A DNA stretch of 64,000 nucleotides from Bugula neritina (Eukaryota > Animalia > Bryozoa). The stretch covers positions 24,754,628 to 24,818,627 of the forward strand of contig OZ037767.1 in assembly GCA_964035545.1 (NCBI GenBank). The letters are read 5' to 3'. The position numbers and the translations under genes were made by a program. The notes beneath the pieces were generated by a model. That model did not search any database, was not told the origin of the DNA, and saw nothing but the letters and a program-made list of their open reading frames with translations. This document shows, one piece after another, positions 3,001 to 34,009 of the stretch (positions within the stretch are counted from its first letter, which is position 1; each line of letters opens with the position of its first letter).

Positions 3001-6000
3001 CATGAGCTGAGGCTGGGCCTTGCTGGAAGTATCTGTTGCCACCTTGTCAGTAACTTCTGCTGCGGTCAACTTAGATTGTTGGCCAGTGGCAGCTTTATCT
3101 CTCTTCTGTTTCTTGGTAACTGCGCTTTCTGGCTTTGTTGGTTTAGCCGGTTCTCTTTGATTTGCAGTTTGCTGCTTTATGGCACTATTTTCCACCACTC
3201 TTGGCTTAAATGCAGCTTTACTATAACTAGGTGATTCTGAACTTGCTCTTTTGTCACCACCATTGCTCAGCACAGCATTCTGCCTGGATTTGACGTCCGA
3301 CTTCTTCAATATTTTTACCGGCGTCTGAACTCGGGAGTTGTTGGACTAAAATTTACATGATCAGTGTGAAGAGAATATGTGTAAATGTACAGGTAAAAAT
3401 ATGCAGTTAACAGTTTACAAGTAGAAGTATGCAGGTAACAATGGACAGGTAGAAATATGCAGGTAACAATGTACATGCAACAGTGTACAGGTAGCAGATG
3501 TAAATCATAATGTACAGATAATAGAGTATGGAAATTGCAAATCAACGAAATACATAATGTCCAATAAATAAATAATGAAAATATTTCTTATCAGCCTTTA
3601 AAAACTAACCACATTTTTGTTGAGCAGTTCAGAATCATTTGCTGATTTTCCAGCTTTCCCACCAACTGAGGCAGCTGAAGAGTAACTTTTGGCAGCAGCA
3701 TTTCTGTTCTGAGAAGATTGCTGTTGCTTCACAACGGCAGCACCAGTCTTAGATTTCCCAGACTGACTATTCTTGAGTCCTTTTTCAGCAGCCGTCCTCA
3801 TGCCGTAAGAGATGTTGAGGAGGGCGTGGGGAGGACACCTGTATCCTTTACCTGGACTACACCTACGTATATATACTTCACTACTACACAGCATATAGCA
3901 GGAAGTGCAAGTAAACATAAAAATGTAAAAGGATTTTGCACTAAAATTGTTTGCATGAACTGCTTTGTTGAAGTCTATGAGAAAAATTAGTTTGCTGTAA
4001 AAAAGCAGAACCAAGCTTTCAGTATACTGATGATAATTGTCAAGCAAACCAAAAGCTCAACACTAAACTGTATTAAAGCTTTGCTTAATCCTAGTGTGTG
4101 AACAAATTTTATTTTACCATGTATAAAAATATTTATAAATATCATCACCTTATGAAATTACAGTTGTCTAGGGAAGAAATGCAGTAAGAGATGCGAATGA
4201 TATTTACAAAAGCCATATATAAATGACTCATTAAATCATTAGCCTAATGACAGAACACACCAGCCTAATATGTTAAAAATAGTGACATTATAACACCGGA
4301 TTCTGTCAAAAAAGCTACCTAATAGATAGACCACAAGCAAACTCCTCATCAAATACAACTTCTACCATGGTGTCTCTGGGGTCGTCCCCTAATATTACGC
4401 CAATTACAGTGCCTTTCAGGCTATATGGTACTGTGAAACCGAGTCTAACATTAACCACCCGGTCAAACAGTTGAAAGTCTGCGGATGGATCTGGTATCAT
4501 AGTGGAGGTCATTGAATATTGCTACAAAGAACACAACTCCTAATTGTAGACAGGCTAACTAGCAAAAAAAATAAATATGCAAAAAAATCAAGCTCAAGTA
4601 AATAATATACAGATGGAATGACACAAGCCTATACACTGGAATATAAAAATACAAAAGTCAATAGTTAAAATTTATATCATTTCCAGTATTTTAGACAGAA
4701 TCACATTGCCAAAGCTTACACAGTTTGTTGTCAGCCATTAAAATGTAAACATCTGATCTGGGAGAAACTGTGAGCAAGATACATGCACTGTTGGGTATCC
4801 TATGCTATACTGCATACAGCTGAACATGTGCATTACCTTGTATATTAGAGCTGGTTTGATAATAATAGTGTGAGTGCCATCAGCATCATCAGGAGATTTG
4901 TTAGACACCAGCTGCTCAACCTTCTCTATGGTAGGGGCCTCTAGAAACAGCCCACCGCACTTGGCTCGGTGACACTTATAAGTCGGTAACGACCGGACAA
5001 ACTTGACCAGCTCAGCACATTGAGTATCCCTACAAACACAGCACTAATTACTGGCAGCACATTGAGTATCTCTACAAACACAGTACTTATTACTGGCAGC
5101 ACATTGAGTATCTCTACAAACACAGTACTTATTACTGGCAGCACATTGAGTATCCCTGCAAACACAGCACTGATTACTGGCAGCACATTGAGTATCTCTA
5201 CAAACACAGTACCGGTCAGTTAAGGGAATACATGCCTGATTCATTATATTGATATAATTACCAGTTTAATTGGCAAATAGGACAAGAAGAATTACAGATG
5301 CAAATTTTACGAAACTGAACCTTTGACTCTCAACATTTGATAATCATTTCTAGAGTAATTGTTGGTACAAATAAAAATCATAAAATAAAATCTATTATTA
5401 TGTAAGCTACATCAGAATTAAAAAATTCAACTTAATGTACCTAACATCAGAATATGATTTACTTTTAAAGCGCTTAGATTCATCAAGTACCCTGTTAACT
5501 ACATCACCACTATGACGAAAACTACTAAATTCACTGTTACAACAAGAAACTTTTTTCACACGTATATGAGATATGTGAATAAACATCCGCAGGGAAGTAT
5601 ATTATAAAACATATTGCTGTTCAGATTCCCATCTATAATCTCCATTTCTATCAGCTGTTATGAACACATGAAATGCTGACAACAAGACCGACACTGTTCA
5701 ATGTAATGTACACACCTGTTCTCAGTAAAGATGTTGTCCGCCTGAAACCTGTCCTTGTTGAGGTTTTCGTGAATGTAGCCGCAGAAATCGGGAAACTTTT
5801 CAAGGTAGGAGTAGATGACATCTGCTGTAGCTTGAGAGTACAACCAGTCTCCATTGTCTTTACGGGTAAATCCAGGACACTACCCGAATATTACACAATA
5901 TCAGTGTTAGCAGTTTATATCAGTTTTCACCTCCTTTAATATGTAAATACTTATTCTAATATACTAGTTAGTAATACACTTATTAGTAATAAACTATTAG

Positions 6001-9000
6001 GACACACATCATCCAACAGCTCTATTACTAAGATATGTACCTCTTCATTTTTCTTATTGTTTTTGAGATCCAGTCCAATATTAATGTTCTCTTTGCCTTT
6101 TGATATGAGCATCATACCGGTTATGCGAGAAACAAAATGGCTGCTAACACCAAGTTGCTGAGCTATTTCATATGCTTTCATATACCTAGCATGTTTCTAC
6201 AACATCATATACAGTCAGTTGAGCCAGAAATAAATTACTTCACCAATAAATACAGTAGAGCTTGAAAATTAATTTCTTTAACATTTTTTTAAATTTCTAT
6301 CTTTAGTTCATAATTACAATGAGAAAACAAAATTTCAAATTGGAAAACTTTTCAAAGTTAAAACATGACTTACATTAAATTTGATGGCTGTAGAAAGATC
6401 TGGCTCAGCAGCCATGTTGACTTTTACCCTTACTCTGTCTTCAAGATGATTAACTACTTTGGCGAGAAAGCCATAGTAGGGGTGAGCGAGAACATACACT
6501 TGGCATCCAACTGGGAAAATATCCTTCAACTCAAAGAACTGCATTGAACCAGCCGACTCCACACCAAACTGTAACAAACATTTTGTGTTTTGGTATAAGT
6601 CACAACGTATTACATAACTTCAAAAGGCACATAACCCCAAAAATATTTACTAGAATATGAAAGAATATAAAATGGAAAGTTGAAGTTAAACCAGCGCTAA
6701 CAATTAGTAAATTTAAGAAAGTTGAATTTGAAATTGAATATGTGATCATATCCACTTCAGTTTAGTTGTATCAACTCCAATAATATAATATTACTTCTAC
6801 TTGTAATATATTAAACTAATTTTTATTGAATACTTTGTCAGTTGGCAATAACATATCATGACAAATAACATAAATTAAATTAATAACGTTGGATAAGTTA
6901 TTTTGGTGATTCAAACCAAGTCACTGGAACCAAAAAAGTATTTTCCTGTCTTATCAACTACTCAGGGAAAATATGTTTAGTTTGTTTTGTATTCAGTCAG
7001 GTTTGCCTTCAACACCAGCTAGCCTATCACTGTACAGTAATACTTATTTGCACTGCTAGTGAAGACTGAGATTTTACCTTACTAAAACCCTTACGAAGTA
7101 CACAAACATGCCCCCTATATACCCACAGTATTAAATAGATATATCTAGTTGAACCTGCTGCAACCTAAAGTAATTAAAGTAAACCATTAAAAATTGAGTT
7201 TTACAAAAAATCTTTTCAAAGTACAACATATCACAAGCCAATTTTTGCACATAGTATCACTTGATAGATAACTGGCTAGACAGCCATGTTGCTTATAGAA
7301 CTAAATTGTGAGAGTAATAACCTTGAGCATAGTGTCATTCTTAACGCAAGCCTGCAAAAGAAACGGGGCGGGCGTAGGTTGCCATTCTTTCTCTACGGTA
7401 ACTCTACCATCATTGAGGTACACATACTTTCGTCCGGTGATTGGCTTTGCTTGTATTATGAAGTAGGTTGGTCCAGCATCAATACCACGCTTCTTCATAT
7501 ACCTGAAAGTTGGCATAGCAAACTAACCCATCAACTGACCTATACTAGATACAATACTCAGACTATACTAGATACAATACTCAGACTATACTAGATACAA
7601 TACTCAGACTATACTAGATACAATACTCAGACTATACCAGATATAATACTCAGACTATACTAACCTTTCACTTAAAGACTGCTCCACTGTTTGCCAAACA
7701 ACCCGATCAGTGTCATCTACAGGTGATTTCACCACCTCTTTCCCTTTCCTATCAAACTCAACCCTCCACTCATCATTCTCCAGCACACACACTTTCGCCT
7801 CAAACAGATGAGGCCAGTTCACCCAGATACTTTTACCCAGTAGCTGCTGACCTAGCTCCATGATGTCAACATCTTCCTAAAAGGAAATATAATGTATATA
7901 CACAGGTATATTTTACTTACTATTCGCCGTCATAGGGCAATTTTTGAGAGAAAATTTACAAAAATGCGTAAACATTTGATAGCTATTAGGAAAACATTCA
8001 AATAATCAATTTAAAGAAGTGTTAGCGATAAAAAAATGGTGATAAACAATTTATGCCATGCCTAAATCCTCAATCAAGAAGAACTTTAAATGTTACATTC
8101 ACGATGAAGAACTGTGTCAGCTAGTAACTGATACGCAACGTCAGCATCTTACCACATCCATCTCATCTATCAGGGTGACTATTCTATTCTCTCCTCTGGA
8201 AGCTTGCTGGAAGACAGTGACACCAAGTTTCTGCAGGTAGGAGTTGTGCTTTATGTGTGTAAAAGTGGGAAAACCAGGGTAATAGAGTGTTGGCTTCACG
8301 CCAACACATAATCCTGAATTCAGCTGCTCTGCCGATACAACAAAATCTTCCCAATTCTTTAGGGTAGTTCTACAACATATGTCGCAATATAGTATATGAG
8401 CTCATTATAAATATACAAGCCACCTGGAAAGTTGCTAGTAGTAAAAAGTAGTTGAACAGTAATATATATACTTGCAGTTTTAGGTAACTCATGCCAGTGC
8501 TTTATATAAGAGCATTTATATTTTATAAATTTGAAGGTTTCAAGCATACACATGCAGATGTCGTCACATACATGTGTATGTATGGGCACCTGCTACACAT
8601 GCCTGATCAGTACGAGAGAGCACCACTAGCTAGATGGGCACCTGTTGCACATGCCTTACTGATGAGACAGAACACAACTAGCTAGATTTAATAGCGGGTA
8701 GCTTCACTTACTTAGTGTGATTCTGGGCGATATCTGGGAAGCCTGGAAGGGTGGAGGGAAACACACCCTGAGATTCAGAAATGTATCTGCAACAAACATT
8801 AACAACACATACTAAAAAGCAAAGCAGTGAATCAACTAGATAAAAAACACTGCACAGTATGTCAATATCATATTTATACTGGAGTACTTCTGGCTGCCAA
8901 TATCTTTGAAAGAATGGCTGTAACGAAAATTGTGCTGATACCGAGTGTTTTGTTACATTATTCTACTTGTTTTGTTTATATCATATGCAGAAACAAACCT

Positions 9001-15910: not shown

Positions 15911-16059
15911 ACTGATTGGTATAAGTATTGATATTATGATAACCATACTCACATTAAGTTTAATTATCACCTAGTAGTTCAGAAAATACTTGCTGGACAT
16001 TGTGATTGTAAGCTACTGACGAGACTATCACTATGAGTATGACTATGACAGTATGAGTA

Positions 16060-16332
16060 GGGTGTGACTAAAATGGGTGGCCACCCGGTGTCGCGGTCCG
16101 TGACACCCATTTTAGTCATAAGGGGGGGGTTTTGACTAAAATGGGTGTCGCCAAAAATTTTCGTTTTATTTTCACATTTTTAGACATTTGTGGCTGCTAA
16201 AATTGTTATTAAATAAATCTTCAGTGAATAATAAACATTTTACAATTGTTTAAACCAAAAAACATGAATAAATAATGATTAAATTAAATTAATTTTAACA
16301 AGAACTAAACCCGATAAGAGTTATCTTTCCTT
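16060..16332 (+). repeat. Left terminal inverted repeat of the MULE
   Basis: The outer ~90 bp are identical to the reverse complement of the right end except for the G-run (8 vs 7). Similarity then decays but is recognisable to AAGAGTTATCTTTCCTT at 16316-16332. Contains three alternating-orientation copies of TGACTAAAATGGGTG. Confidence 0.95.
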
Positions 16333-17950
16333 ATAATATAGCTAGCATATTCTATTTCCAACATGGAGCTAGAGTTGGAGTAGGTGTGATTTAGGAAGCC
16401 AACACAATTTGTTGTTACTTCTTTTAAGTTCTGTTACTGTAAAATTCCATTAGATACAAAGCTTCACAGTGTCACACTTTCTCTCCGAATGTCGTACTTT
16501 GAATATAAGCAAATAAAATATTAATATACATTTTGTATGTTGAGTTAAATTTAATCATAATGATTATGATATTCATTTGATAATCATCATCATCATTATC
16601 ATGATAAATTTAAAATTAATTGATTGCTGATGATGATGTTATGATGATGATGATAATCTCATGAGTAATCATTATTATTATTTTTATTTTAACTTTCATT
16701 TTGATTTGGTTGTAGTTTGAGTGAGACTAAGAGTAATACTAAAAGTAATTATAAACCTAAATCAGTAAATGGTTTAACTAACAGTTAGTGTTACGCTTAC
16801 TTGTTACTAAGTCAGTTGCTGTAGATCAAGATGAAGATGTAACACCAACTAACACTGACAGTCACTGTGACTGTGTCAAGTGAGACTGTTGGTCTAAACT
16901 TAGTCTTACCTTTTAACTTTTAAGTAATTTAGTGTTACTACATTCATTAGTGTTAGTATTAGTATATTACTTATAGTTTAATGCTTTTTACTTAGTTGAG
17001 TTCACCAACAGTAACGCTGTCATTATCATTATATTCATATTGTTAGACAATTTAATACATACATACATATAGATATAATTATAAATTACTAACATACTAT
17101 CAGTAGTGCTTAATCTTTTGATCCTCCTCAGTACTGGCACCTATAGGTATATATTAAATTTCCTCAAACTTCAAGACTGAAATATTGCCATTGCTAAGAG
17201 TTTATTAGCATTGCTTGTTACTATTATTAACAGGCAATAGTGTTGCTCACTAGATTTATTCGGTTTGGTTTTCACTTTTGTTGATGTTTGTGTTAATGAA
17301 GATGCAATCTCTTCAGGAGCGATTATACACACTCCAGCTAGTGCTTTTCACAAACACTCAAATAGTGACACTAAAATAGTGCATCATAAGGAATCTTTTT
17401 TAATAAATGATGTTTCAAGTCATTCCGTTATTTCAATCCATTTTTAAATCAACATTGTTTTCATTTTAGTTGGTGCAATGGCTAGTGGAAGTAGACCCCC
17501 CCCCCCAGTACCCCCTGCTAAACTTAACTCAATAGATTATGGTCAGGAACGGCAACTGTTTTGTTAATTAACTTTAAGTTGCATAGAAAATATATTGCAT
17601 TTAATTTTAATATTATATTTGAAATGTATGTCTCCTGTTTCTAATAAAGAATAAGCAAGTTTAAATATAATTTTTTCAATGACATATTAAATTGTTATGC
17701 TAATTGAAATTTTGAAACAGCTCAGCTGCTCTGACCTTTATTATCTGTAATTGAAGACATGTAGCTACAGATCAAAAACTGTATGGTGCAGCTAATATAT
17801 TAAAGCCTGTACAAAATTTGTCAGATGCACTGTTGCATCACTAGTTGATTTTACTGGTCTCAAAAGTTTATAGTACAGTTTTTCACTGGCAATAGAGAAG
17901 ACAACTTTTTCAGTGCACTGCAATACTTGTTTTTGTTTCGAATTTAATTC

Positions 17951-20277
17951 CACATTTGAAAATTTTAAAATTATTTGAATTAAAACAAAAATTTGTATAA
18001 AAATTATTGTAAGCTACTTTCCTGCCACACAGAAATTTAAAGGCCTCAAATAAAACAATCGTTTCCGTGCGACCAAATCCCCCTCCACTTTAGTTATCAA
18101 GGGGTGTTCTTTTTACTAAAATGGGTGTTGCAAGAATTTTTGATCTGTATTTTGCTATGTGAATAAATCTGATTTTATAACTATTATCATTAATTTGATT
18201 TTGAGTTTTGCACAAACTCAGCTAATTGAAATGCATGTACCTGCAAAGTAAAGATTAAAAAGATGAAAATTATGATGCACAATATCGAGGTCAATAACTA
18301 GGGGGTGTCGCGACGAGAAGTCAATACATATATCAAAATTTAAGTTTAATGATAATTTTTAAAGTTTTTCTAAATTAAAAAAAGTTGATATAAAGAAAAT
18401 TTCAGTAAATGAAATCTAAAACTAATCTGATGGTCATAAGTGCCCAAAAAGCCAAAAAATAGAGCAAACATTATAGCGACACTCATGCCCCCCTTCTATT
18501 GTAGTTATCCAGTGGTGTCTTTTTGCTAAAATGGGTGTCACGAGAATTTTTGGTTTGCATCTAACACTGTGGACAGATATAATTTTACAACTGACGTCAT
18601 TAAACTGATTTTGCATTTTTACACAAACTAAGCTAATTAAACTGTCGTGAAACTGCGACACAAGAATAAATAAAATTAAAATCATTTTGAAAATTCTTGG
18701 GGTCAAAAACTAGGGGGTGTCGCGAAGAATTCAATATGTGTATTTTAACTTAATTTCATTGATATTTTTCAGTTTTAGACATGCTGACTTATGAACCATA
18801 TACTTTAAACTTGTAAAAATACTAAGAGCAATATTAACAAACCAAAATGTTCACAAAATGTGAAAATAAAACTAAAAATCTCTGCGACACCCATTTTAGT
18901 CAAAACCCCCCCCCCAAATGACTAAAATGGGTGTCACGCTGATTTTTGCTTTATTTTTTAGCTTTCTGAACGGTTTTAGACACTACAAATTATGTAATAT
19001 TGAAACTTTTACTTGCTTTTACTAATTAAGATTATTAAAACTTTTAATACTCATAAATATTGGGAAAAAATGATGAAAACAAAACTAAAAGCAAAGAGAA
19101 GATAACTCTAGGGAGTGTCACTGACGGTTTCGGTTTTCATTATATTTTAATATTATTGCAAATTATTATATAATAATACTGTCATTTGGAGTGAAACAGT
19201 TATAATATATCATATTTTTCCTAAAGTTTTGATCAACAACTAATTTAACAACAAAAATTGCCAAAAAGCTAAAAAATAAAGCAAAAATCACCGTGACACC
19301 CATTTTAGTCATTTGGGGGGGTTTTGACTAAAATGGGTGTCGCAGAGATTTTTAGTTTTATTTTCACATTTTGTGAACATTTTGGTTTGTTAATATTGCT
19401 CTTAGTATTTTTACAAGTTTAAAGTATATGGTTCATGAGTCAGCATGTCTAAAACTGAAAAATATCAATGAAATTAAGTTAAAATACACGTATTGAATTC
19501 TTCGCGACACCCCCTAGTTTTTGACCCCAAGAATTTTCAAAATGATTTTAATTTTATTTATTCTTGTGTCGCGGTTTCATAACTTTTTAATTAGCTTAGT
19601 TTGTGTAAAAATGCAAAATCAGTTTAATGATGTAAATTGTTAATTTATATCTGTCCACAGTGTTAGATGCAAATCAAAAATTCTTGCGACACCCATTTTA
19701 GCAAAAAGACACCACTGGATAACTACAATAGAAGGGGGCATGAGTGTCACGATAATATTTTGCTCGGTTTTTAGGCTTTTAAAGCACTTATGGCCATCAG
19801 ATTAGTTTTAGATTACATTTGCTGTAATTGTTTTTAAATTCAATATTTTTAATTTAGAAAAAAACTTCTAAAATTAGCAATAAACTTAAATTTTGATCAA
19901 TGTGTTGACTTCTCATCGCGACACCCCCTAGTTATTGACCTCGATATTGTGCATCATAATTTTCATCTTTTTAAGCTTTACTTTGCAAGTACATGCATTT
20001 CAATTAGCTGAGTTTGTGCAAAATTCAAAATCAAATTATTGATAATAATTATAAAATCAAATTTATCCACATAGCAAAATACAGATCAAAAATTCTTGCA
20101 ACACCCATTTTAGTAAAAATAACACCCCTTGATAACTAAAGTGGAGGGGGGTTTGATCGCACGGAAACGATTGTTTCATTTGAGGCCTTTAAATTTCTGT
20201 GTGGCAGGAAAGTAGCTTACAATAATTTTCATACAAATTTTTGTTTTAATTTAAATAATTTTAAAATTTTCAAGTGT
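17951..20277. repeat. Internal long inverted repeat (arms ~17951-18965 and ~19265-20277, ~300-bp spacer) containing TIR-derived motifs
   Basis: The arms are reverse complements over ~1 kb with scattered substitutions (e.g. AAGCTACTTTCCTGCCACACAGAAATTTAAAGGCCTCAAA at 18011 mirrored at ~20180-20218). GCGACACCCATTTTAGTCAAAAC(n)..TGACTAAAATGGGTGTCACG at 18884-18938, and its mirror at ~19292-19343, match the TIR subterminal block. Confidence 0.95.
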
Positions 20278-20989
20278 AAAAGTATACAAAAAACTTAAGT
20301 AAACTCGAAAAAACAGGTATTGTAATTTAGACAATAATTATTATTGTTGACAATATAAAACCAGAATGTTACTCACTTTCCACCAGGTTGTTCTTAAAGT
20401 TATCTTCTCTTTAGCATATGCGTACTATGAATTGTTAATGAATTAAAACAGCTTGGATGTTTTGTTTACCATTCAGTTTGCCATGGTCATTTAGTGGCTG
20501 CCTTAATATTGATTGAACTGCACCCTACAAGAACATCATGTTATAATTTAGCAGGCATATCTTTACAATAATTAATAGCTTTTAAATTATAGAATATACC
20601 ATCTTGCTATTTCTATTGACATCACCAGGTAAATACTTGACTCATTTAGTTTTATAATTTGACTTACTAGTAATTACCAAAACTTAAATGAGTTTTGAGG
20701 TAGTACACCAGACTTGTCTTGTTTAATAATAATTTTTAGTAAGTGTTGTTGTGCTATGAGTTTTGAATATCTATAATTCTTAATTCATTCATATAAAGTG
20801 TAACTTTGCAATGTGTTAATTGCTATATAACAAAATATTTTATGCTTGTATATTTTCATTGGTAAATAAATGAAATGTCTCTTGATTTCACTATTATGTA
20901 CTTTTTCTACATACTGAGGATGTTCTTTTCGTTTAGAATCACAAGCTGTTTTTTATTTAAAGATTTCACAATTTAACTGATGGAGGTAT

Positions 20990-22057
20990 ATATTTAAAAT
21001 ATTGTTGTCTGTGTTTAAGAAGAGATGCAATTTCTTCAGATGTTGACTATCAAGACTCCATGCAGTTAGTGCAATTGCACAGACAACAGTTTCTGAGTAG
21101 TATTATCTTGAAAGCAAGTCTGGGCACTCAAAAAATATGTTTTAATTTTTTTTATAGAAATAAATATTATGTAAAAGTTTTTATCTCTTATCATAATAAA
21201 ATAAAGGGGATAGGTGCATTGACGAATTTATTAGAAACTACATGATATAAAGATTTACTATAGCCTACAAAGTTTTCTCCACATATTATTTTAATTTATA
21301 TACCAACGTTCTTTTTTAAATTTGTTGATAGTGTTAAATATTGGCCCAAAGCCTTCAAAATAATTATTATGCCGAAGTTCTTATAGATCAATAGTGATTT
21401 ATATGTTAACATTTTTGAGATTTGATGAAAGAGGCTTTCAAACTCTTTTGTTTGCGTCAGATTCTTAATTTTTACTGTTTGTTATGTATCAATACATCAA
21501 AGATTTTTTTAAAAGTTGTATATGAGTATATCTCTCAAACAATGGAACCCTTACATCAAACTTAAATAAATTCAGCATGAGATGTTTACAGTTGCTATAT
21601 TGCCATTCTATTGACCAACTGCACTGCCAATGTTGTGGTTGTTTGCACTAGAATGTGGCTATTGATGTTGTCATGATATTCATCTGTCCTAACAATCAAT
21701 ACCTTATATATAGATGAGCAGAAAAGCAGTGATGACAATTCAATTACCTGTTTAAATTTTTGAACTTAGAGGAGAATAACTTGATATATAAAAACCATTG
21801 CAACAAAATATTTTGGCACCGATGATGTAACACTTTCAGCATATTATATACATCACAATCTAAATGTTTGGAACACTCTGTTGACCAACATAATATTATA
21901 TTTAAAGGGTCCAACACTTCTAACCATAGCTTAAACCATTTTCATTCCGTAAGCTTTCTACACAAACGCAAATTAGCAAATGTTGGTATGGCTCATCCAA
22001 CAGCAGTGTGACAGCTTTCAACAGAATGCTATTTGAATAAACCGTTTTTACTTTTGT
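20990..22057 (-). pseudogene. Probable decayed, internally deleted paralogue of the OTU-MULE transposase gene
   Basis: Minus-strand peptide fragments resemble the intact plus-strand protein and occur in the same order, interrupted by stops and frameshifts, with a 59-nt GT-AG intron (21689-21747) at the OTU/transposase boundary. Aligned by eye only. Confidence 0.55.
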
Positions 22058-24134
22058 CTACAGAAATTAAATTGAATATATATTTAGCTCAACATCCAAT
22101 CTCCATGCTTCCTACATTCTGCACATACATAAACTGATAGCACCACAGCAAATTAAAGGGGGAATGTAACTGGTTGTGTGATGCCCACAACAGTCATCAC
22201 CATAAATAACATGACCTCATTAACCCTTCAAACTTCCTATTTATGCTTAGTTAACAGTCAGCAGGCATTACTAATCTACCTTGTGCTGACTATTAGATCT
22301 GTGGTTATGTCATTGTGGTTGGGGTGACTGTCATAACTCCTCTACCTCTACTAGACGATATTAATACTCTGAGGCTATGCAGTAATGTTTACTATGTTTT
22401 AGGATGCAATCATTGTGGTAATTTTATGGACAATCTTGACTATTTAGCAAATTTTAGGGACATATTTTTGCATGGTTTAGTAACAACAGCCATAGTATAT
22501 AAACTCTTGATAAATTTATTATAATCAGTTGGCAGCGTGATCTTAACAAATAACTGTTTTTATTTCAATTTAATGTTTTTCTATATAGTTTGCTGATCGC
22601 TGTGTATTCAGGACAAAAAGGTTAGTCACTTTATGCATATATTATATTATCTGTATATTATTGCTTTTACAGTAAAAACTTTCATAGCTCTTCTTTTATA
22701 TTGACTTTTGTAATTAACCACGCTAATGCATGCATATCATTTATATAACTATTATTTTAAACTATCATATAGTTTTTTTTTCAGCAAGTGTACAAATAAA
22801 CTGGTGGAAAGTACAACTTCTGCATATTGCATATATGTGTCATTTTACTTAATTTAGGACACACTCTATATCTCTATTTTTTAGCTACTTTTCACAATTT
22901 AACTGCTAATGTATATGATTTATTGCCCTAAAATAATGAAATAGTAACAAATACAGCTGAATAATTAAAGTTTCTTTTCAAATTTGGTTGATTTTCTATG
23001 TTTTTATCCAAATTCTTAAGTAAGTTGGTATGTGCGGGACGTGATGGTTTTTTCATCACGGTCGCGCATATATATTTAGCTCAAATGACAATGCCGGTGC
23101 AGTTTAAAGTTGGGAAATCCCCTCCCAGCCTTTTTCTGTTATGCATCATTATAATTAGTAGTACATAAAGTTACCACACATATAGTAAATTTCCATGAAT
23201 TCTGAGCAAACTACAATGTTTGGTCATAATTTGCACTAAATAGAGTACTAAATAGAGTAATATGACTCATATGAAAATTTGGGTGCATGCTTCCGGGCTA
23301 GTTACACTTGCTGTAACATATGCTGTATTTTTGTTCGGTAAAGGTTTTTATCTTATAAAGACAATTGAGAAGCATTACTGGGTGAAGATTATATAGGCTT
23401 AATGCTATATTACTTTATACTTGTGATTTTATAATAATTAGATTTTTACTGAGTTTGAAACGAGCAATAATAGGGAGAAGGGAAAAGGTCAGTAGTCATT
23501 AGTCTACCATTCTATAACCACTTGAATAATTTCAACACAATACTATTACCTGATTTAAACTAGTATGTTTTTATATTTTCTATTGTTATATTATATAATC
23601 TTACTGTTTTAATCTTGCACACTATAATGTAACTGCCCAAATTGTACCAACTTAAGACTTCACGGTGTTGCTTTCTGTAACAAAAGTGTTTAATAATAAA
23701 CTACATTTTAAAATTCCAGTAAATCTACCTCTATAGCGTCCTTGCTTGTTATTGAACCAATCAAAACTATTGCAATGCCTATAACAACTATAATGATATT
23801 ATTGCAAGAAGATGGCTTTGGAGCATTTATTAACTTTTCTTTTTTTTCCAATGTCATTTTATGTACATGAACAGGAACATTGCTTCAAACTGTTAAATAA
23901 ATTTACTAATGTCACATAACATTCCATTATATTACAACCATTTGATGTTTATCTAATTTTACCTATCATATAGCGATGAAGCTCATTAGTATACTTTTAT
24001 TCAATTAAATGCAGTACAACAAACAATAATTTAATTGCTATATAAGTACTGCCAAATTATCAAATTATTTTATGTTTAAAAGAAAAACATCAAATTGGTT
24101 ATCTCTTAAGCCAATATAACTTATTGTTTTTTAG

Positions 24135-27100
24135 GTTGAGAAAGTTGAATATTGTAGAATAATGCATTGGAAGAAAAGTATGTTGGCAAAGGTACAAATA
24201 TTTTGAAGCTTTAAACCTTCTTATATAAATAATAAACCAAACATTGCTGAATGGCATATTTTACTGAAAGCTATTTTAATTTTTTTTCAGTCCACTGCCA
24301 TTAACAATAGTTTTTAATAAATACTATAATTACCAATAGCTATAATTACTAGGCTTATACTAAATTGGTTAAAAAGTGATCAACAGCATGTAATTGGAGC
24401 ACACTTTTCTAAAAGCATATAATACAGCGAAGCATATGTCAAACTTTACCTAAACAGATATGATTTTGCTAGATACATGAAATTTAAGATTGCAACTTAC
24501 ATATTGCATGGTATATATATTATTTTGTTTTGTAGGAATGTTCTGTGAAAAAAGACGAGAATCCAAGTTCAATTATAAGGTATGTGTGTGTTGCAAACAT
24601 CTGTGAAAGAGGTTGATTGCAATCCCTGTTATATTTTTATCATGCAGAAGTGTATTTGAATATATGACTTTTGCAGTCCAATGTTACGGTTACCACCCGC
24701 CAAACATCAGCCACAGGCGCAGAATGTAAGTGACACAGACCAACCTCTTGCCTGGAATCAACTATGTTGCCAGGTATAGCTGTTAACTAACTCATTACAA
24801 TATCCTTATATGCTAACCTACGTAACAGGGTCTTTTTGCAGTATAAGCCTATATTGAAAATAGTATATACAAAGCATTTTATACCATGCCTGTTATAGTA
24901 TTCAATGTTATTCTCTGCCAGCTCGTAGTTATACGCCCCAATTGGCATAGCTGTTATCAATAATAACATTGGTATACCTAGTATGACAGAATAATAATTA
25001 TATTTCATAACTTCGAATTAAATATTTAGGAGAAACTGGTTGCTTAGACATTCAAGTGATAATTACAATTCTTATATCTATCAGTATAGTGTGTTGGCTG
25101 TAATTTGTTTCAACATTTTGATTGGTGCCTTTATAAGAACATTCCGTGACCAAAGCTATAATATATAATAATGTAATATAATAATAAAGTTCTGTTTTTT
25201 TGACGCAAGCTATTGTAAGCCCAGCTTGAATAGTTAGTAATTTAATATCGGTTGCAACATACTAATTAAAATTATTTGCGATTTACCAATGTTATCTAAT
25301 CTATGTGATTTTATTTAAAAGCTGCACTTTCAAAGATTAACGTATGTATTAATGCTGTTGAAAAGTTTAATGTTCTATTTGGTGTTAACAACTGCTGACA
25401 TATTATTAGGGTGCACTATTACATTTCTATTACTGCAGGACAGATCATGCATGTCATGTATGGGTCTGAACCACCCTAATCAACCAGCGAGTGAGAATAT
25501 TATTTATGCCAACAATCCCATGTCTCCAAATGTACAAGATCACAATCTGCCTTTGCCTAACTGCGCTGTAAGTAAACGGAACTGAACAATAATTTTGTTT
25601 GGATAAATTTTGAAGAGAGCAGTTCAGAATATTAAATGTGTTAAATTTGTTCATGAATATATTATTTCAATAATATTTTCTAGTAAAAGGCAATTTTATT
25701 ACTTTTGATAGGGGAGGTATTTATTTAATCCTTATTTTATTTAATTAAATTGCTTGTAGCCTACTGGATGGAAATCTACAACTAACTGTAGCTGCAACTT
25801 TCCCCATTTTACCATCAAGTTGACAGGGCAAAAAAATTATTATAACGGACGAAACTTGATTGAGCATGCCACAACTGAATCTTTGGGAAACAGATATTTT
25901 GAACATCAACACTCAACTACCAATCAAGTGCCAGATTCAAATGTTTTTCACCGTGGTACTACTGATGAAAGAAACAATTTGGAAAAAGTGACGACACCCA
26001 ACCAAATTAGAAATGATGTGCCCCAGGTAAAACTCTATTACAAAAAAGAAACAAGTTGTTTGAAGTGAACATTATTTATTTTGAATATAGGATTTTTAAA
26101 CATAAAATGCGTAAAACTTGTGCTTATATCTAAGTAGACCATTAAAGGCAACTGGAAACACAGTGGGTGTAAATATAAAATTATTTATTAAACTATATAA
26201 TACATAATATACCTTAATTTTCACGTGATCATTAACCTGCATAGAATTGGTGCCATAAAGTGAAACATAATATACATATAACATGTTAGAAATAGACTAA
26301 TTTTTTATATAAAAACAAAATAGTTTACTTGGCTTTTATGCAAATAAAGTAAAAACACAATGTTTCTCATTTATTTTTTTGTAATAAAATTCTAGTTTAT
26401 ATGGATATATTTCAACTAAATATATTAATTTGAACATGAACCTGATCATTTTTTATAGATGCGAGAAGAAGAACAACAAAGCCATAACATTGACGAAAAT
26501 CCTGTAGCTTCTAGAGAAATTGAAGAAGTTTCTGTTGTTCAGAAGGTAACCAAAAGCCTTAGTACTATATAAATTAATTTAGTACCATTTTTGTACAAAA
26601 TAAGCCTTCCCATAAAAACAACTTGGACAAGCTAAAAATATAATGTTCCTCAATATAATATAATTTACTTGAACTCACCCAAAATAAAGCAGCTAAAGCT
26701 ATGTAGGCTACATTATATGACCTTTTTGAAAAACAATCATCATGTGCGCTTGTTATTTTCTAAAGACACAAGATGACCAACCATCTACACACATTAGAGA
26801 AAAGCAATTTCAAGAAATTCAGACCCAGCTAGTAGCTTTGAGTGAGCCTGGCAGAGCCCTTGATCCCAAGATAGTCCAAAAGGTAAACGTCAACCTGCAG
26901 TGAAAAACAATTCTCAAACTGACAATAATTATAATTAAAAGAATTTGCAGTAATTTCACAAATATTTTCAATTTAAATAAATTCAATTATTTTAAAATAA
27001 AACATTGTCTGGAATAATCGAATGCCTTAGATCCAACTTTTGGTAGCAATTAATTTTTAAATTTATAATTCTTTCTTTGCTGCTAACAAAATCCAAAGAA

Positions 27101-30100
27101 TTTTTGTCTGAATAGAGAATTTCCAACCAAGTGTATTTCAATGATTTTATTGGTGATTTTCTACAGATAAACACTATTCAGAAGAGAAAAGAAAACCGTT
27201 TACAAAGTGAGACGGGAAATACATGTGATGACGAGATTACCAACAAATATTTGAGGTAAATCGACAAAAAATGAATCGATTAAAATAACTATTATTAAAT
27301 AATTCCATGCAAGAGAAAAGGGTATAATAATCTAAATTATAATACCTAATGATAATTTTATTTTTAAAAATGAGATGTGTCATGTATGTATGCATGTATG
27401 TATGTATGTATGTATGTATGCATGCATGTATGTATGTATATGTAAAACTATATTTTTCAGGAAAATAGGAATAGATGATATTAGAGCCATTAAAACTAAC
27501 GGTGATGGGAATTGCTTGTTCAGAGCGCTGAGTTGTGCTCTTTACTCAGATGAAAAGAGCCATGTAGAACTTCGTATTCGGGCATGTGTACACTTATATA
27601 ACAGCATGGACACTATAATGAATCGAAATAACCTGAGTAAATGGTTTGGCTTTGAGCTTGATGATGATGAATATTGTGCTCTACTTGCTAGTGCCATGAC
27701 ACAAGGTAATTTGGATTTCGGTGCAGAAAATTTGTCTAAATTGCTGATGCAAGATCACGCTATCGAAATTATGAGAAATGGGGAATATGGCAGTCAATGG
27801 TTAATAATTGCAATAGCTCATCTTTTAGGAATAAATGTACAAATTATATACCCTGTTCAAACACCACCACGATATATGAACTGTCTTCTAAGGCTCAATG
27901 AAAATAGTGATGACAAAATCATTCTCAGTTGGACTACTGCTGGTAGATATGTTGAAGACGAGAATAGTTTAGTTCCAGACCATTTTGTTGTGTGCACAGC
28001 AATGACCAGATCTCCGCAACATCATATGCCTATCAACATACAAGAAAAAGCAGATGCTGAAGTAAAGTTCAAAACTTATGGCCAATTCACTAGAATGTAA
28101 GTTTTGGAAAAGAAATAATTTCTGTAATTTTAGATTGTAACTGTTACTCTTTGTAAGATTGATTGGTTTATCATGCATGCTACTGAAAGGCCATATTGTA
28201 ACATGCAATGGCAACATATGACACAATTGTAATAATAACATACCTAAAATTCATATGATTTCTAGGCATACAACATAACTTTATTTATATAATCAATGTT
28301 GCCTGTGGTCAAAATAGTTAAGAATTATCTGACAGTTAAAATAAAAATAAATATATTTTTATTATTTTCAGGTCATGTCATCAAAATGTGCCAGCACTGC
28401 ACACTGACACACTGATAACCACTGAACATGCCATAGAGCTAACCAACAAACTAATAGAAGACACTATCACTTACGAGCAAGTAGTGACCCATAAACGATT
28501 AAATGGCATTATTTGTAGCGCTATATATGTAGTAAATGCTGATATTTACGAAATGAGAAGAGATGGCTGTGGGGTCTGGATAAAAACAAATTCCAGAGCC
28601 ACTCAAGTAAATGGAAAACACTTCATGTCAAGCAGAAGAAACAGCTTTGTTTGCAAAGGCAATAAGGGGTTGAAGAAAACGGAAATAACTTTTAAGAAAA
28701 GAGATGGAAGCTTTTTAGATTTATTAATTATTCAATATAGGTTTGACAATGCATCTGAAAGTAAAGTTATTGTCAAACCCCATGGAAACTCTAAAAGACC
28801 AGTTCCTTTCTTTCCGAGTGACAAAGCATTGCTGCAAGAGCTAAAGGACAAATCAACAGGCCTACATAGCAACGAAAACCCAGTGACAATATACAACAAA
28901 TCTGCCATAACTAAAAAACTGCATACAGTAAGAACAATAGGGGCAGTGCCAAGAGATGTAAAACAAATAAGAAATTTTAGGAACAAAAAACAAGCAGATC
29001 CAGTGGAGTCACTTTACGCATTGTATTTTGCGCAAAAGTCACATGATCAGTTTATCCAACAAATTAGTTTTGATGATGGAAATTTAACAGTCATCCTATA
29101 TACAAAGGAACAATTGAAAATATTTGAAGAATGTGCCATAAACTTAAGGAGGCCACTATACCTGGACACTACATTTAATCTAACGAACATGTACACAGTG
29201 ATATTTACATTGAGAGATGAGCGATTTGCTGGATCCCCAATAACAATTGGACCAATGATGCTGACTCAGAAAATGGATAGTGGTAGCTACACTGTGTTCT
29301 TCCAACATCTCATCAGAAAGTTGCCAAAGCTACAACATAGACAATTAGTATTTGTAACTGATGGTGAAAAAGCAATACTAAAGGCTCTTCAAATATTTCC
29401 TAAAAGACATGCATTTCGGTGTTTTTCACATGTGTACGATAACATCCAACGAAAGCTAACTCAATTATGCATACCAGCTAGCATAAAAAAGGTTATTTTA
29501 TATGACATTAGTCAAAAATTGAGTGGAGAGACAGAGAGTAAAATGAAAGAAGAGAGAAAAAACACCACTGAAAACTGGCAGAATATTAGTCGAAACAACT
29601 GCTACCAAAGTGTTTGCAAATTTATACACTATTTCAACGAACAAATCTGGGATTCTCTTATCGTAAATTCTAATGAAAAGATCCAAGAATACAATTTCGC
29701 GCAATCAACTTTTGTTACAACAAATGCCTCTGAGTCATGTAATGCAATGATCAAAAGATACATTCAAGGAAAAAAATTAACAGTGTCCAACCTTTGCATC
29801 TGCCTAAAAGAAATGGTTGATGGAATGTTAGAGGAAATGAAAAAAGGAATATCTGGAATATCGAAAAAATTTATCTTATTAGATACTTGGAAAGGCATAA
29901 AATTAGATCCAATTAGAACAATTAATAATCAAAAGAATATAGAAATTTCGCACGAAAATGAAGTGATGAATTTGCTAATGAGTAAAGCTAGTAATGCAGA
30001 AGTTGTACAAGTTAGGAACAGTGAAGATCATGTTTCAAAACTTGACAATTCACCACAATATGAAACTATAAAATCAAGGCACAACTCTCAACGATGCTGC

Positions 30101-30679
30101 AGCTGTGAAACCTACAAAAATTTGATGACCTGTGCACATATAGTGGCTGTTGCACAGCATGCTGGAGATAGCAGTTATTCCTCTATTAACTTGACACCAA
30201 AACCAAAGCTAAAAAACATTCTCGACAAATATGGAGGAAGAAAAAGAAATGAAAAGCCAAGGAAGAGGCGTGGAGCACAGAAAGATAGCAATCAGTCCAA
30301 AAAGAGTATTTTCCGAAACAAATCTGAAAATGGATATAGTAGTGTAACCGTAAAAAATATTAACAAAATGCAAGGATCTAGTGAAAATTCAGCTCTCACA
30401 ACTGCGAACAAATTAAACTCTACTAATCTAGAATTCATAGTTATTAGAAGAAGTAGGCGCATAACAAACTGCTTTGGATGTAAACAAGATTTTAATTTAT
30501 TTGACAGTTTTGTTATTAAACACCAACACAACTTTTTTCATATTGACAAAATGTGCATTAGGAAATCAAAAATCTATAGATGTATTTTTTCTAATACAGT
30601 GGTAGCAGATGGATCGATAGATTTCAAAAAAGTTCATCAGTTATGCTACCAAAAAGGTATTACAGTAATTCCAAGGTAG
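24135..30679 (+). CDS. Spliced OTU-protease / MULE transposase fusion protein (~1270 aa)
   Basis: Ten phase-consistent, stop-free GT-AG exons: 24135-24191, 24536-24579, 24677-24773, 25439-25567, 25760-26026, 26459-26545, 26766-26882, 27167-27255, 27461-28096, 28372-30679 (3831 nt). The first in-frame ATG is at 24162, but further upstream exons are possible. The small 5' exons are predictions without homology support. Confidence 0.8.
27376..27443. repeat. (TATG)n microsatellite in a transposase-gene intron
   Basis: Directly visible imperfect TATG/CATG run. Confidence 0.9.
27461..28096 (+). CDS. Exon encoding a vertnin-like OTU cysteine protease domain
   Basis: KTNGDGNCLFRALS..L..DE..H.ELR.R (Cys box with catalytic D and C), GEYGSQW..IAIAHLLGINVQIIYP, and IILSW...PDHFV (His box). 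The YP / W / xHFV pattern is that of the VRTN-like OTU group. Confidence 0.88.
28372..30679 (+). CDS. Exon encoding the MULE DDE transposase core with SWIM zinc finger
   Basis: LYLDTTFNL (D1), FVTDGEKA (D2), FRCFSHV (CxxH), TTNASESCN (E), CSCETYKNLMTCAH (SWIM CxC...CxH), basic NLS-like GGRKRNEKPRKRR and a C-terminal CxxC. The frame is uninterrupted. Confidence 0.93.
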
Positions 30680-31559
30680 TATATTTTAAAAATCATTTAA
30701 CTATAACTAAAAACATTGTTCAACAAGACCATTAAATCAACAAATGTCATTTACTAATATTTGCCTATACAAATGTTACTGTAGTTTTGTAATGCCCTGT
30801 TTAGCATTTTTTCCAATAGTATTGTCATAAGACCTTTGAGAAAAGTCTTTTTAAACAATTATATTACATTCATATTATATAGGTTTTGGTTGTAAATAAA
30901 TTATAATTGTAATCGAATAAACTATTTAAATGCCACATTCAAAAATTGTTGTCCAAAGTCTTGCAACAGGTAATACTACTAAATTCATAATCATTGGTGT
31001 TTAATGTTGATTATTCAATATAATTTAGTCATTAACAATCATTCAAATTATCAAATTTCGCCTTAATTCCATGAAATAAAGATTATTGAAATTAGGTCTC
31101 AGTCATGCTTATTCTAGACTTTGTGCACTTTATTATCTAGAATTTAGATCAAGGATATTTGGCTTGCAAATTGAGTTTGTTTGACGTGAAACTACGATGA
31201 CTCATTTAGGAATTACAGTAGCCTAGTGGTTTGCTGAACGTAAATCAAGCTGAAGTCTAAATAAACTAAAATTTAATAAAATAAATTAGTTGAGTAAAAG
31301 CATTGCAGAAAAATTAAACAGTGCTTTTGAATATAATACATTTCACAACCATTGTAATAATCATATACCCCATGTGATATTACAATACTAGTTGGTAATC
31401 ACATTAATATATATTAGCAAAAACTAAATTATAGTAAAAGAAGTTCTTTAAAATACACCTTAATTTTCTTCAATGGAGTTACTAAATTTGTGTAACTATA
31501 ATTGTTTACCAGACATGTCTGCAATTACATTAAACATATAAAAACTGATTTTAAAAGAG

Positions 31560-31612
31560 CCTACATACCTTACCTACCTACCTACTCACCCACCCACCAA
31601 CCTACCTACCTA
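31560..31612. repeat. Imperfect (CCTA/CCCA)n microsatellite
   Basis: Directly visible. Confidence 0.75.
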
Positions 31613-31751
31613 TTGGGTCAGCAAAAAACCCAAGCCATCGAAGATTGCTTGGCATATCATACACTACAGTTAACCATCATTATCATAATCATCATTGTAA
31701 TTATGAGTTGTTCTGATAAACTAAATTTAATGGTGTTAAAGTGACAGTTAA

Positions 31752-31955
31752 AACAGCAGCTGTGATCTAGATCTTGCTTAGTGAACACGAAGTCAAGGGT
31801 TGGAACCCCAACAAAGGCCATTGGTGATGTTAGGAAGAGCATACAGTCATAATTTCTCCAGTGCCTCATCTAAACATGCTCTTATCTTGATCTAACAAAA
31901 ACCCTTTTTATCAGGGGTTTCTCACTGTGATAGTGACTATAAACTTGCGTGAGTT

Positions 31956-31956
<1 letters not shown>
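31752..31956 (+). mobile_element. tRNA-derived SINE, copy 2 (nested inside the MULE)
   Basis: B-box-like GGGTTGGAACCCC. The body GATGTTAGGAAGAGCATACAGTCATAAT...ACCCTTTTTATCAGGGGTTT...GATAGTGACTATAAAC matches copy 1. Confidence 0.75.
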
Positions 31957-32132
<176 letters not shown>

Positions 32133-33017
32133 TTCAGCAAAATAGTTTTTTAAACCACATTGAATATGAAAATAAATATAATTTTGTTCATTTCATGTTG
32201 CAACATATATTTGAAGAAGTATAAAATAGTAGGTAAAACAAAACAATCATGTTCATTTTAATATTCAATAAATTTAAAAAACTTGACAAAATTAAAAATA
32301 AATATTAGTTTACTGGTCAGTTATCTAATTTTATATTTATTAAATCATTAATATATTAGTATTATTTTTGATAATAGTACTAATACAAAATCTTAAAGGA
32401 TATAATGATATAGTTGAATATGCTACAATAATAAAACAATAAGTCTAATGCTAATAGTAATACTAATAGTAAGTGTAATACTAATAGTAAAACTCTAGAA
32501 TACTAATACTAATAGTAAAAACCACTATGATTATAATATTAATTTAAATCCTATACTAGGTCTTATAGTTAAAGTTATAATTATGAAATTAAAAGTACAA
32601 CAATTAGATTTAGTATGACTAGTACTAGTACTATAGTAGTTTTACTCTACTTTTTAGCATTACTCGTATAATATTGCTTATTCGTTGTATACCCATACTG
32701 ACTGTATAGGTAGAATTAATCCTAGTATAAATAGGTACTACAATTGACTGTTGACATAACAAATTGAGATAGCTGTTAGCAGACTTGAAGTTACACTTAG
32801 ACTGAGCAAGACATACTCCTAGTCCTACTCACTGTAGCCTACTGTCACATTCACCATTGAGTTAATTTTATAATTCCAACTGTGAATTGAAATGAAAATT
32901 TAAATTCATTTTGCAACTAGTAGCAATTAGTTATACTTATAGTAATACTTATAACTTATACTTATAGTACTACCACCACCACCGCCACTACGACCTAGTA
33001 CTAGTTCTATTGATTGC

Positions 33018-33289
33018 GAAGGAAAGATAACTCTTGGTAGACTTTAGTTTTTCTAACTTTTTAAATTTTATTATGATAAGTTGGCGATTTTTGGTTTTAA
33101 ATTATTGTGAAATATTCAATATTTACTGAAGAATAATTTAACAATGATTTCAATGGTCACAATTGTCTAAAAATGTAAAAATAAAACGAAAATTTTTCGC
33201 GACACCCATTTTAGTCAAAACCCCCCCTTATGACTAAAATGGGTGTCACGGACCGCGACACCGGGTGGCCACCCATTTTAGTCACACCC
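33018..33289 (-). repeat. Right terminal inverted repeat of the MULE
   Basis: Reverse complement of 16060-16332; ends ...CACCCATTTTAGTCACACCC followed by the TSD. Confidence 0.95.
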
Positions 33290-34009
33290 GTATGAGTATG
33301 AGCATTGAGTAGGATTATGAATAGACACTAACTCTAAGTGACTAACTCCTATGTTGATAACAATTGAATTAGAATGACTTTAATCATAATGATCATGGTG
33401 ATAATGGTAGCTATAAATATGTATAAAAGATCAAAAAGGTAAATGAAGTCAATTTAAATTAAGTTTAAGCAGCTTATTTTAAATTTCAATTTAATTTGAA
33501 TTTCTAAACATTCTCAATTTAAATTTGTGAAATTTATCTTAATCAAATTTAATCAAAGTGCTAAATCTAAAATTTAAATTTGCGCACATTTTAGTTTTGT
33601 AACACACTTGAAATGCAACTTAATTTTATTCAAATTACTACTGGTATGTTTAAAGTTGAATTATAAGCATTAGGATTGCATTTTGATTTATACTTATGTC
33701 ATCTTATTAATATTTTCATAAGCTATTGTTTGTAAATTATAGTAGTATCAAAATACATTTTTCAAGCATTATTTTAAAACCATACAATCTGTGATCATTT
33801 TATATTACAGTTTGACTTATTTTTAGTGCATAAAGTTAAGAGATTTTATTATTCAAGCAATAGTTTTTGCTAAAATTCAAATTGAAGCTTATGGTAGTAA
33901 GATATTTTAGTTTTATAACTAAGCACCATTTAAATACTCAACTTATTACTAGTAAAAACTTCACAAATATAATTTTTACATATACTTTCAGATATACATT
34001 CAGTTAAAC

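Follow-up and report, generated by a model that had tools for sequence, protein, structure and literature searches.

A recently mobile 17.2-kb Mutator-like element of Bugula neritina with a predicted OTU protease joined to its transposase

A window of 64,000 nucleotides from the bryozoan Bugula neritina (contig OZ037767.1, positions 24,754,628 to 24,818,627 of the forward strand) holds a Mutator-like element (MULE) that spans positions 16060-33289 of the window, i.e. 17,230 bp. We favor the view that this is an autonomous and recently mobile 17.2-kb MULE with one gene, which encodes a spliced transposase with an N-terminal OTU cysteine protease that may support transposition in the way outlined below. 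As read from the DNA, the anatomy of the gene and the fusion of OTU and transposase are highly probable. That the OTU domain is an active ubiquitin-directed protease in the service of transposition is reasonably likely from its sequence.

The element and its gene

The gene model comprised ten exons with GT-AG borders between 24135 and 30679 (3,783 nt, 1,260 aa), with matching phases and no stop other than the terminal one. The preliminary description of this DNA had joined an OTU and a transposase open reading frame (ORF) through a phase-2 intron, and this held: both ORFs lie at the positions given there, and each of the three decayed gene copies retained the GT-AG sites of intron 9 at 28096/28372. 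Within 21800-28400 the donor of this intron ranked 2 of 326 GT and its acceptor 1 of 316 AG by a rough consensus score devised for this analysis. The two nominal ORF starts, however, proved to be artefacts; 27375 falls in intron 8 ahead of its microsatellite, and 28388 is a GTG, not an ATG. The eight exons proposed further upstream kept the frame, yet they add 279 residues instead of about 295, and exons 1-3, for which no diverged copy was found, were placed by splice signals and phase only. The donor of exon 1 was the weakest (rank 39), and the first Met is codon 10 with the first ATG at 24162. Those exons of the N-terminal 250 residues that were compared with Pfam had no match, and the retrieved proteins included no outside homologue of this region.

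The more downstream exons could be compared with a diverged copy at G000:C3:6.885-6.895 Mb, which retained all donors and acceptors of exons 4-10. Over exons 4-9 substitutions amounted to 84/1318 (6.4%) in exons vs 207/1393 (14.9%) in introns (p=5e-13), and indel events to 2 vs 28 (p=1e-6). An open stretch of 267 nt, the length of exon 5, occurred in 0.15% of local non-coding draws. Junction 8/9 was scored with a profile of 112 homologues from which this protein was excluded; the spliced form reached 156.8 bits compared with 147.4 for the unspliced ORF, and 0/200 shuffles of the exon-8 part matched the spliced score. Thus the junction is supported by the higher profile score together with a conserved Asp residue that exon 8 contributes. 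Variants pooled from the transposon copies gave ratios of nonsynonymous to synonymous variation (pN/pS) of 0.51 for exons 4-8 (p=0.019), 0.27 for the OTU (p=9e-5) and 0.42 for the transposase (p=1e-9), values which are raised by decay after insertion. The OTU and transposase domains are under purifying selection.

So many introns had been called unusual for a DNA transposon. Intron-rich transposon genes are not unprecedented, plant CACTA tnpA being an example. Yet the nine introns exceed the zero to four of Ginger1 (PMC2836005).

For outside searches and structure predictions each exon was submitted on its own, and the joined protein served in local scripts only. That exon 10 encodes a MULE transposase with an intact DDE motif was supported by Pfam MULE (PF10551), which matched above cut-off (E=6e-8), and by D757, D822, C842/H845 and E946, which align with the DDE and CxxH residues of relatives. 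In Foldseek searches ISCth4, a transposase of the IS256/Mutator type, was the best match, followed by Hermes. A SWIM match at 30080-30163 stayed below cut-off (E=0.002); the C-terminal region of exon 10 contains Cys/His. The first part of exon 10 resembled GCM/WRKY-type DNA-binding regions, with FAR1 (0.94), GCM (0.91) and FLYWCH (0.87) as language-model look-alikes in Atlas, no Pfam match and moderate model confidence. FLYWCH, a domain of the Phantom subgroup, had no Pfam match at E<=1 in this protein; many Phantom members likewise lack it (PMC6446971).

The ends of the element were found by repeat analysis as inverted arms. These terminal inverted repeats (TIRs) were 83% identical overall and near-identical over the outer 150 bp; long TIRs with repeated motifs are a feature of Mutator elements. 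They are flanked by an exact 9-bp target-site duplication (TSD), the left copy of which sits within a degenerate TATGA(C/G) repeat. A second full-length copy, 99.9% identical, was located on the minus strand of another contig (G000:C4:22596146-22613366). It differed in 17 alignment columns, namely 3 substitutions in 17.2 kb and short indels, almost all of the latter within homopolymer or microsatellite runs. Its flanks are unrelated and it has its own, different 9-bp TSD. Together with the different contig these properties identify it as an independent, very recent transposition and rule out a duplication in the assembly. The left TIR had at least 76 matches in the AT-rich 216-Mb genome, many of which pair into elements of 1.3-1.7 kb, and all five of the derivatives read carried an exact 9-bp TSD. 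Thus TSDs of 9 bp were seen at both full copies and five derivatives, as is the rule for Mutator elements (8-11 bp, mostly 9).

Decayed copies of the gene were present twice in the genome and once in two metagenome assemblies (L050, L051). In older copies (L050:4261-9943; G000:C3:6895446-6895896) the right part differs from that of the element, and an inverted 5' region, window 21811 back to ~19389, comes after the transposase, which suggests that multi-kb foldback arms may have formed. In L050 a TIR-like end abuts the intron 8 microsatellite, so that only the OTU and transposase exons remain. Intron 9 of a decayed copy holds a 4.8-kb insertion (G000:C3:6887646-6892490). Next to a decayed copy lies another decayed transposase of this group, more distantly related (G000:C3:6898466-6900824; 40-63% protein identity), beside which no OTU was found.

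Table 1. Positions of features in the 64,000-nt window.
Feature	Position	Strand	Remarks
Left TSD	16051..16059	.	9 bp, GTATGAGTA; same as 33290-33298
Left TIR	16060..16332	+	~270 bp; starts GGGTGTGACTAAAATGGG; motif AAAATGGGTG three times
Foldback-like palindrome	17945..20284	.	2.3 kb; arms 94-96% complementary; ladder with ~410-bp period
Three nested dispersed repeats	~22143-22792, 22831-23278, 23463-23791	.	unrelated; many genome copies at 70-82%
Exon 1	24135-24191	+	aa 1-19; least certain, phase fit and splice signals only
Exon 2	24536-24579	+	aa 20-33; donor ranked first and acceptor second in the region
Exon 3	24677-24725	+	aa 34-50; strong donor, phase fit
Exon 4	25439-25567	+	aa 51-93; splice sites conserved in diverged copy
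Exon 5	25760-26026	+	aa 94-182; splice sites conserved in diverged copy; no Pfam match
Exon 6	26459-26545	+	aa 183-211; splice sites conserved in diverged copy
Exon 7	26766-26882	+	aa 212-250; splice sites conserved; 2 substitutions/117 nt vs diverged copy
Exon 8	27167-27255	+	aa 251-279; start of OTU domain; conserved Asp272
Exon 9	27461-28096	+	aa 280-491; OTU core
OTU residues in exon 9	27504; 27513; 27981	+	Asp295; Cys298; His454
Intron 9	28097-28371	+	GT-AG, phase 2/2; links OTU to transposase
Exon 10	28372-30679	+	aa 492-1260; DNA-binding-like region, MULE core, weak SWIM match
GCM/WRKY-like region	~28475-29032	+	first ~200 residues of exon 10; putative DNA binding
Transposase catalytic residues	29165; 29360; 29420-29431; 29732	+	D757; D822; CxxH; E946
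Right TIR	33019..33289	-	inverted arm in repeat analysis; starts GGGTGTGACTAAAATGGG
Right TSD	33290..33298	.	9 bp; exact match to left TSD

The long 5' part of the element contains further repeats. Within the palindrome there are 12 TIR-type motifs, among them two end-like sites placed back to back, and no TSD was seen around it. About 1 kb of it forms the interior of 1.7-kb non-autonomous elements and is common to L030, L031 and L034. The nested dispersed repeats were present in both full-length copies. A decayed second OTU-transposase at 20990-22057 was considered and found no support from tblastn, three hidden Markov models or DNA alignment against shuffles.

The insertion separates two host genes in divergent orientation. 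The start of XRN1 is near 13896 (minus strand), with the element ~2.2 kb upstream of it, and a coiled-coil gene without informative Pfam match starts near 34010 on the plus strand, with the element 0.7 kb upstream; its first exon looks LEKR1-like. A 17-kb insertion within the shared promoter region could affect both genes. The XRN1 gene region has short tandem arrays at 5013-5222 and 7517-7662, with units of 42 bp and 23 bp.

The OTU domain, its relatives and vertnin

That exon 9 adopts an OTU fold, as the preliminary description had proposed, was corroborated on three counts. Pfam OTU matched above cut-off (E=3.8e-8), the AlphaFold model had a predicted local distance difference test (pLDDT) score of 90.4, and Foldseek returned OTUD3 (E=1.3e-6), OTUD1 and DUBA as best matches, and also Cezanne and viral OTUs. 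The catalytic triad named there needed revision in one member. Cys298 and His454 are intact; in the aligned OTU rows the Cys was conserved in 152/157 and the His in 125/157, and both codons were retained in every decayed copy that covers them. The position two after the His is Val. The Asp of the GDG motif, by contrast, is probably not part of the triad. This Asp is the oxyanion-hole position of OTUs. An Asp mostly 26 residues ahead of the Cys was conserved in 86% of 112 homologues and corresponds to D272 here; exon 8, which encodes it, is outside the folded segment. The motifs around the Cys resemble A20. Because of the conserved Asp before the Cys and the analogy to A20, Asp272 is the better candidate and probably the third catalytic residue. 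In a tree of OTU domains this one formed a long branch and was not placed.

Searching with exon 9 yielded 286 proteins, three of which also match the transposase, downstream of the OTU; a profile of these three identified a fourth OTU-transposase protein. P0050 and P0173 have the OTU followed by the MULE domain in uninterrupted ORFs. In P0131 of the tunicate Styela clava a PHD finger and one intron come ahead of a single exon with OTU and transposase; its 8.1-kb element has TIRs starting GGGTGT and occupies three sites, all flanked by a 9-bp TSD. Styela P0063 has the OTU-then-MULE order as well, while Ciona P0093, P0067 of the rotifer Brachionus and P0108 contain an OTU and the start of the transposase. 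The order is thus known within one exon or ORF from Styela, Ciona, Brachionus and metagenome proteins. The linker between OTU and DNA-binding region varies across relatives. An N-terminal PHD finger occurs in three OTU fusions elsewhere; none was found upstream of the OTU in this element. The same type of OTU is C-terminal in the pogo proteins P0119 and P0020 and N-terminal in the Helitron protein P0152; P0089 is a further Helitron match. Among outside OTUs the closest is P0008 (32%), which has an ORF of its own upstream of a gene for a hAT-type transposase (L057:1179-5016). The related transposase P0003 carries a C-terminal Ulp1 and a PHD finger in place of the OTU, with a CG-1 match. A single clade of OTU-bearing transposases was modestly rejected by the approximately unbiased (AU) test (p=0.027; 11 rows, long branches).

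Some further loci were noted in these searches. A 741-aa open frame at G000:C1:710154-711416 fits a tunicate-type OTU-MULE profile better than this element (E=2e-27), and four clustered OTU matches at G000:C2:15990492-16009545 showed no relationship within the sensitivity of the search with exon 9. P0180, an OTU-MULE protein of the P0173 cluster, comes from a bacterial metagenome bin (Candidatus Thiodiazotropha sp.) and is probably host DNA carried into the bin. One Styela PHD-OTU-MULE copy (L053:7176-15280) sits inside a 5S rRNA gene (7064-7182) of a 5S array; targeting of 5S rDNA was rejected, with 1/3 insertions in 5S.

The OTU had been termed vertnin-type. The link to vertnin (VRTN) appears weak and comes from the automatic 'Vertnin/VRTN-like' names that homologues of this OTU bear, among them an OTU-transposase protein of Brachionus calyciflorus. 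No vertebrate VRTN was among the results when a molluscan VRTN-like protein served as query, and a MULE domain was present in 0/70 relatives of that protein. The papain-like domain of human vertnin has no catalytic sites (PMC10318531); what resembles a transposase in that protein is a helix-turn-helix (HTH) of the IS3/IS911 type and no MULE core (PMC3024977). The traits of the vertnin family are an inactive OTU, an HTH behind it and a fixed gene, whereas here Cys and His are present, a MULE domain follows and the gene is mobile. Our literature search, which left out most subscription papers, found nothing on VRTN with a transposon. It is conceivable, if doubtful, that the 'vertnin-type' OTU is an active accessory protease exchanged across invertebrates between elements of the MULE, hAT, pogo and Helitron types, that many invertebrate 'Vertnin' entries are transposon proteins, that OTU-MULE fusions arose more than once and that VRTN is a domesticated, inactivated descendant. 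In any event an invertebrate protein named 'Vertnin' by automatic annotation can belong to a transposon.

Proposed role of the OTU and alternative explanations

We propose the following sequence of events. By analogy to Muta1 (PMC5499845) the GCM/WRKY-like region would bind the repeated TIR motifs, and the DDE core would excise the element via double-strand breaks that leave hairpins at the flanking DNA. Insertion by the same core would generate the 9-bp duplications, as expected from MULE biochemistry, and the enzyme would also mobilise the non-autonomous derivatives in trans. The OTU, tethered just before the DNA-binding region, would act in cis as a deubiquitinase with Cys298, His454 and probably Asp272. 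It may deubiquitinate the transposase to which it belongs as well as chromatin or break-signalling proteins in the vicinity. The transposase would thereby escape being degraded or removed, and host repair in response to the break would be tuned. A deubiquitinase at the transposon ends is suggested by the fold, the conserved residues, the selection and the position of the domain. Ubiquitin proteases were proposed to serve transposition in 2010 (PMC2836005), and OTUs in Ginger1 and Helitron and Ulp1 in Mutator elements have been discussed in this role (PMC2836005, PMC6431247).

Several observations weigh against this proposal. Identity to solved OTUs was 10-17%, so that the specificity of the OTU cannot be read from the sequence. 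No OTU was found with the nearest transposases, i.e. within 10 kb on each side of a Clytia locus and in P0002, for which only 2.4 kb upstream were available; thus the OTU is dispensable for MULE transposition in general. Taken together with the Ulp1 and PHD finger of P0003 and the tree, this marks the OTU as an exchangeable accessory that was acquired repeatedly or else lost frequently. Finally, retention of intron 9 would end the protein past the OTU at an in-frame TAA right after the donor (28098-28100), and the intron contains AATAAA at 28340 and 28346, a motif which is common in AT-rich DNA.

The latter signals would suit a gene with two products, where transcripts mostly terminate within intron 9 and yield a free-standing OTU, the transposase being produced separately or through rare splicing. 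Exon 10 by itself is indeed a 768-codon open frame. Yet the frame starts nominally with a GTG, intron 9 has the strongest acceptor, the second strongest donor and matching phase and is kept in three decayed copies, and relatives have both parts in one exon, which leaves two products improbable. Keeping the element and the fusion as they are, the OTU could instead remove another modifier, e.g. SUMO or NEDD8, and mainly counter silencing at the ends. P0003 with its SUMO protease Ulp1 and PHD finger would fit here, as would the PHD fingers, chromatin readers, at the N-terminus of three OTU fusions elsewhere, and some of the viral OTUs among the fold matches were solved with ISG15 bound. However, the closest folds, OTUD3, OTUD1 and DUBA, are ubiquitin-directed, this element has no detectable PHD finger and we know of no OTU-type SUMO protease, so we regard this reading as rather unlikely.

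We consider it still less probable that the OTU cleaves its own transposase in cis and releases the DDE part from the polar N-terminal region, like the OTU-like peptidases that cleave viral polyproteins. The N-terminal position on a 1,260-aa protein and the variable linker would allow for it, and viral OTU-like peptidases with both activities have been described (PMC10318531). On the other hand, the OTU is C-terminal in P0119 and P0020, N-terminal in P0152 and a separate ORF at P0008, a variation more in keeping with an isopeptidase that acts in trans than with a fixed cleavage step. The least likely alternative, and a very remote one, is that OTU and upstream exons are host cargo captured in the manner of Pack-MULEs and useless to the element. 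MULEs do capture host fragments (PMC6431247), eight of the nine introns precede the OTU core, and the N-terminal region is without Pfam match or outside homologue. It is the purifying selection on the OTU (0.27, p=9e-5), weaker on exons 4-8 (0.51, p=0.019), that argues most against useless cargo; in addition, relatives of the OTU are mostly linked to transposons, and the host genome yielded no donor gene for either exon 5 or exon 9. On balance, a deubiquitinase working for its own transposase remains our preferred reading.

Comparison with known systems

A close parallel is Ginger1, whose cut-and-paste transposases bear an OTU or an Ulp1 domain; it has TIRs of 40-270 bp, GT-AG introns and the same proposed role (Bao et al. 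2010, PMC2836005). Ginger1, however, has a Gypsy-like integrase core, a C-terminal OTU, 0-4 introns and a length of 2.6-7 kb (PMC2836005), whereas the present element has a MULE core, an N-terminal OTU, 9 introns and 17.2 kb. Mutator elements with a papain-like protease that acts on ubiquitin-like modifiers are known from hydra, lancelet, Arabidopsis, maize, rice and melon (cited in PMC2836005); their protease is Ulp1 (C48, SUMO) and not an OTU. With the animal MULEs Phantom and Muta (PMC6446971, PMC3169594, PMC5499845) the element shares an 8-10-bp TSD, subterminal repeats, a foldback-like structure and perhaps, by its putative DNA-binding part, a WRKY-GCM-type region. It differs from Phantom in the absence of a FLYWCH match. 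Some Phantom proteins may bear OTU or Ulp domains. The Styela clava PHD-OTU-MULE elements (XP_039247589.2 and paralogues) have the OTU directly upstream of the transposase, repeat-rich TIRs starting GGGTGT, 9-bp TSDs and several recent copies as well. Yet they carry a PHD finger instead of the polar N-terminus, one intron, 8.1 kb and no SWIM tail; identity is ~24%, and the transposase tree does not group them with this element (AU p=0.027). Helitrons and Helentrons bear an OTU of the same broad group (PMC6431247), but on a rolling-circle Rep-helicase and not a DDE transposase. Vertebrate vertnin has an OTU-like domain, and invertebrate homologues of the present OTU are automatically named after it, but no MULE core is reported for vertnin, and the human form lacks catalytic sites and has an IS3/IS911-like HTH.

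A broad survey of MULEs makes no mention of OTU (PMC6446971), and our literature search, within whose reach the original Phantom paper and Repbase did not fall, found no paper on OTU-MULE fusions. Why OTU, Ulp1 or USP proteases occur in several superfamilies of DNA transposons has been asked since 2010 (PMC2836005), and no experimental answer was found in the literature searched. An intact, very recently mobile element with known ends and many non-autonomous partners, together with the single-exon form of Styela, makes this question testable. The findings extend OTU fusions to Mutator elements of several animal phyla. Ubiquitin-type proteases in transposases have been known from Ginger1 with OTU and Mutator with Ulp1; what Bugula neritina adds is an unusually long, intron-rich, intact and recently mobile Mutator element with a predicted N-terminal OTU.

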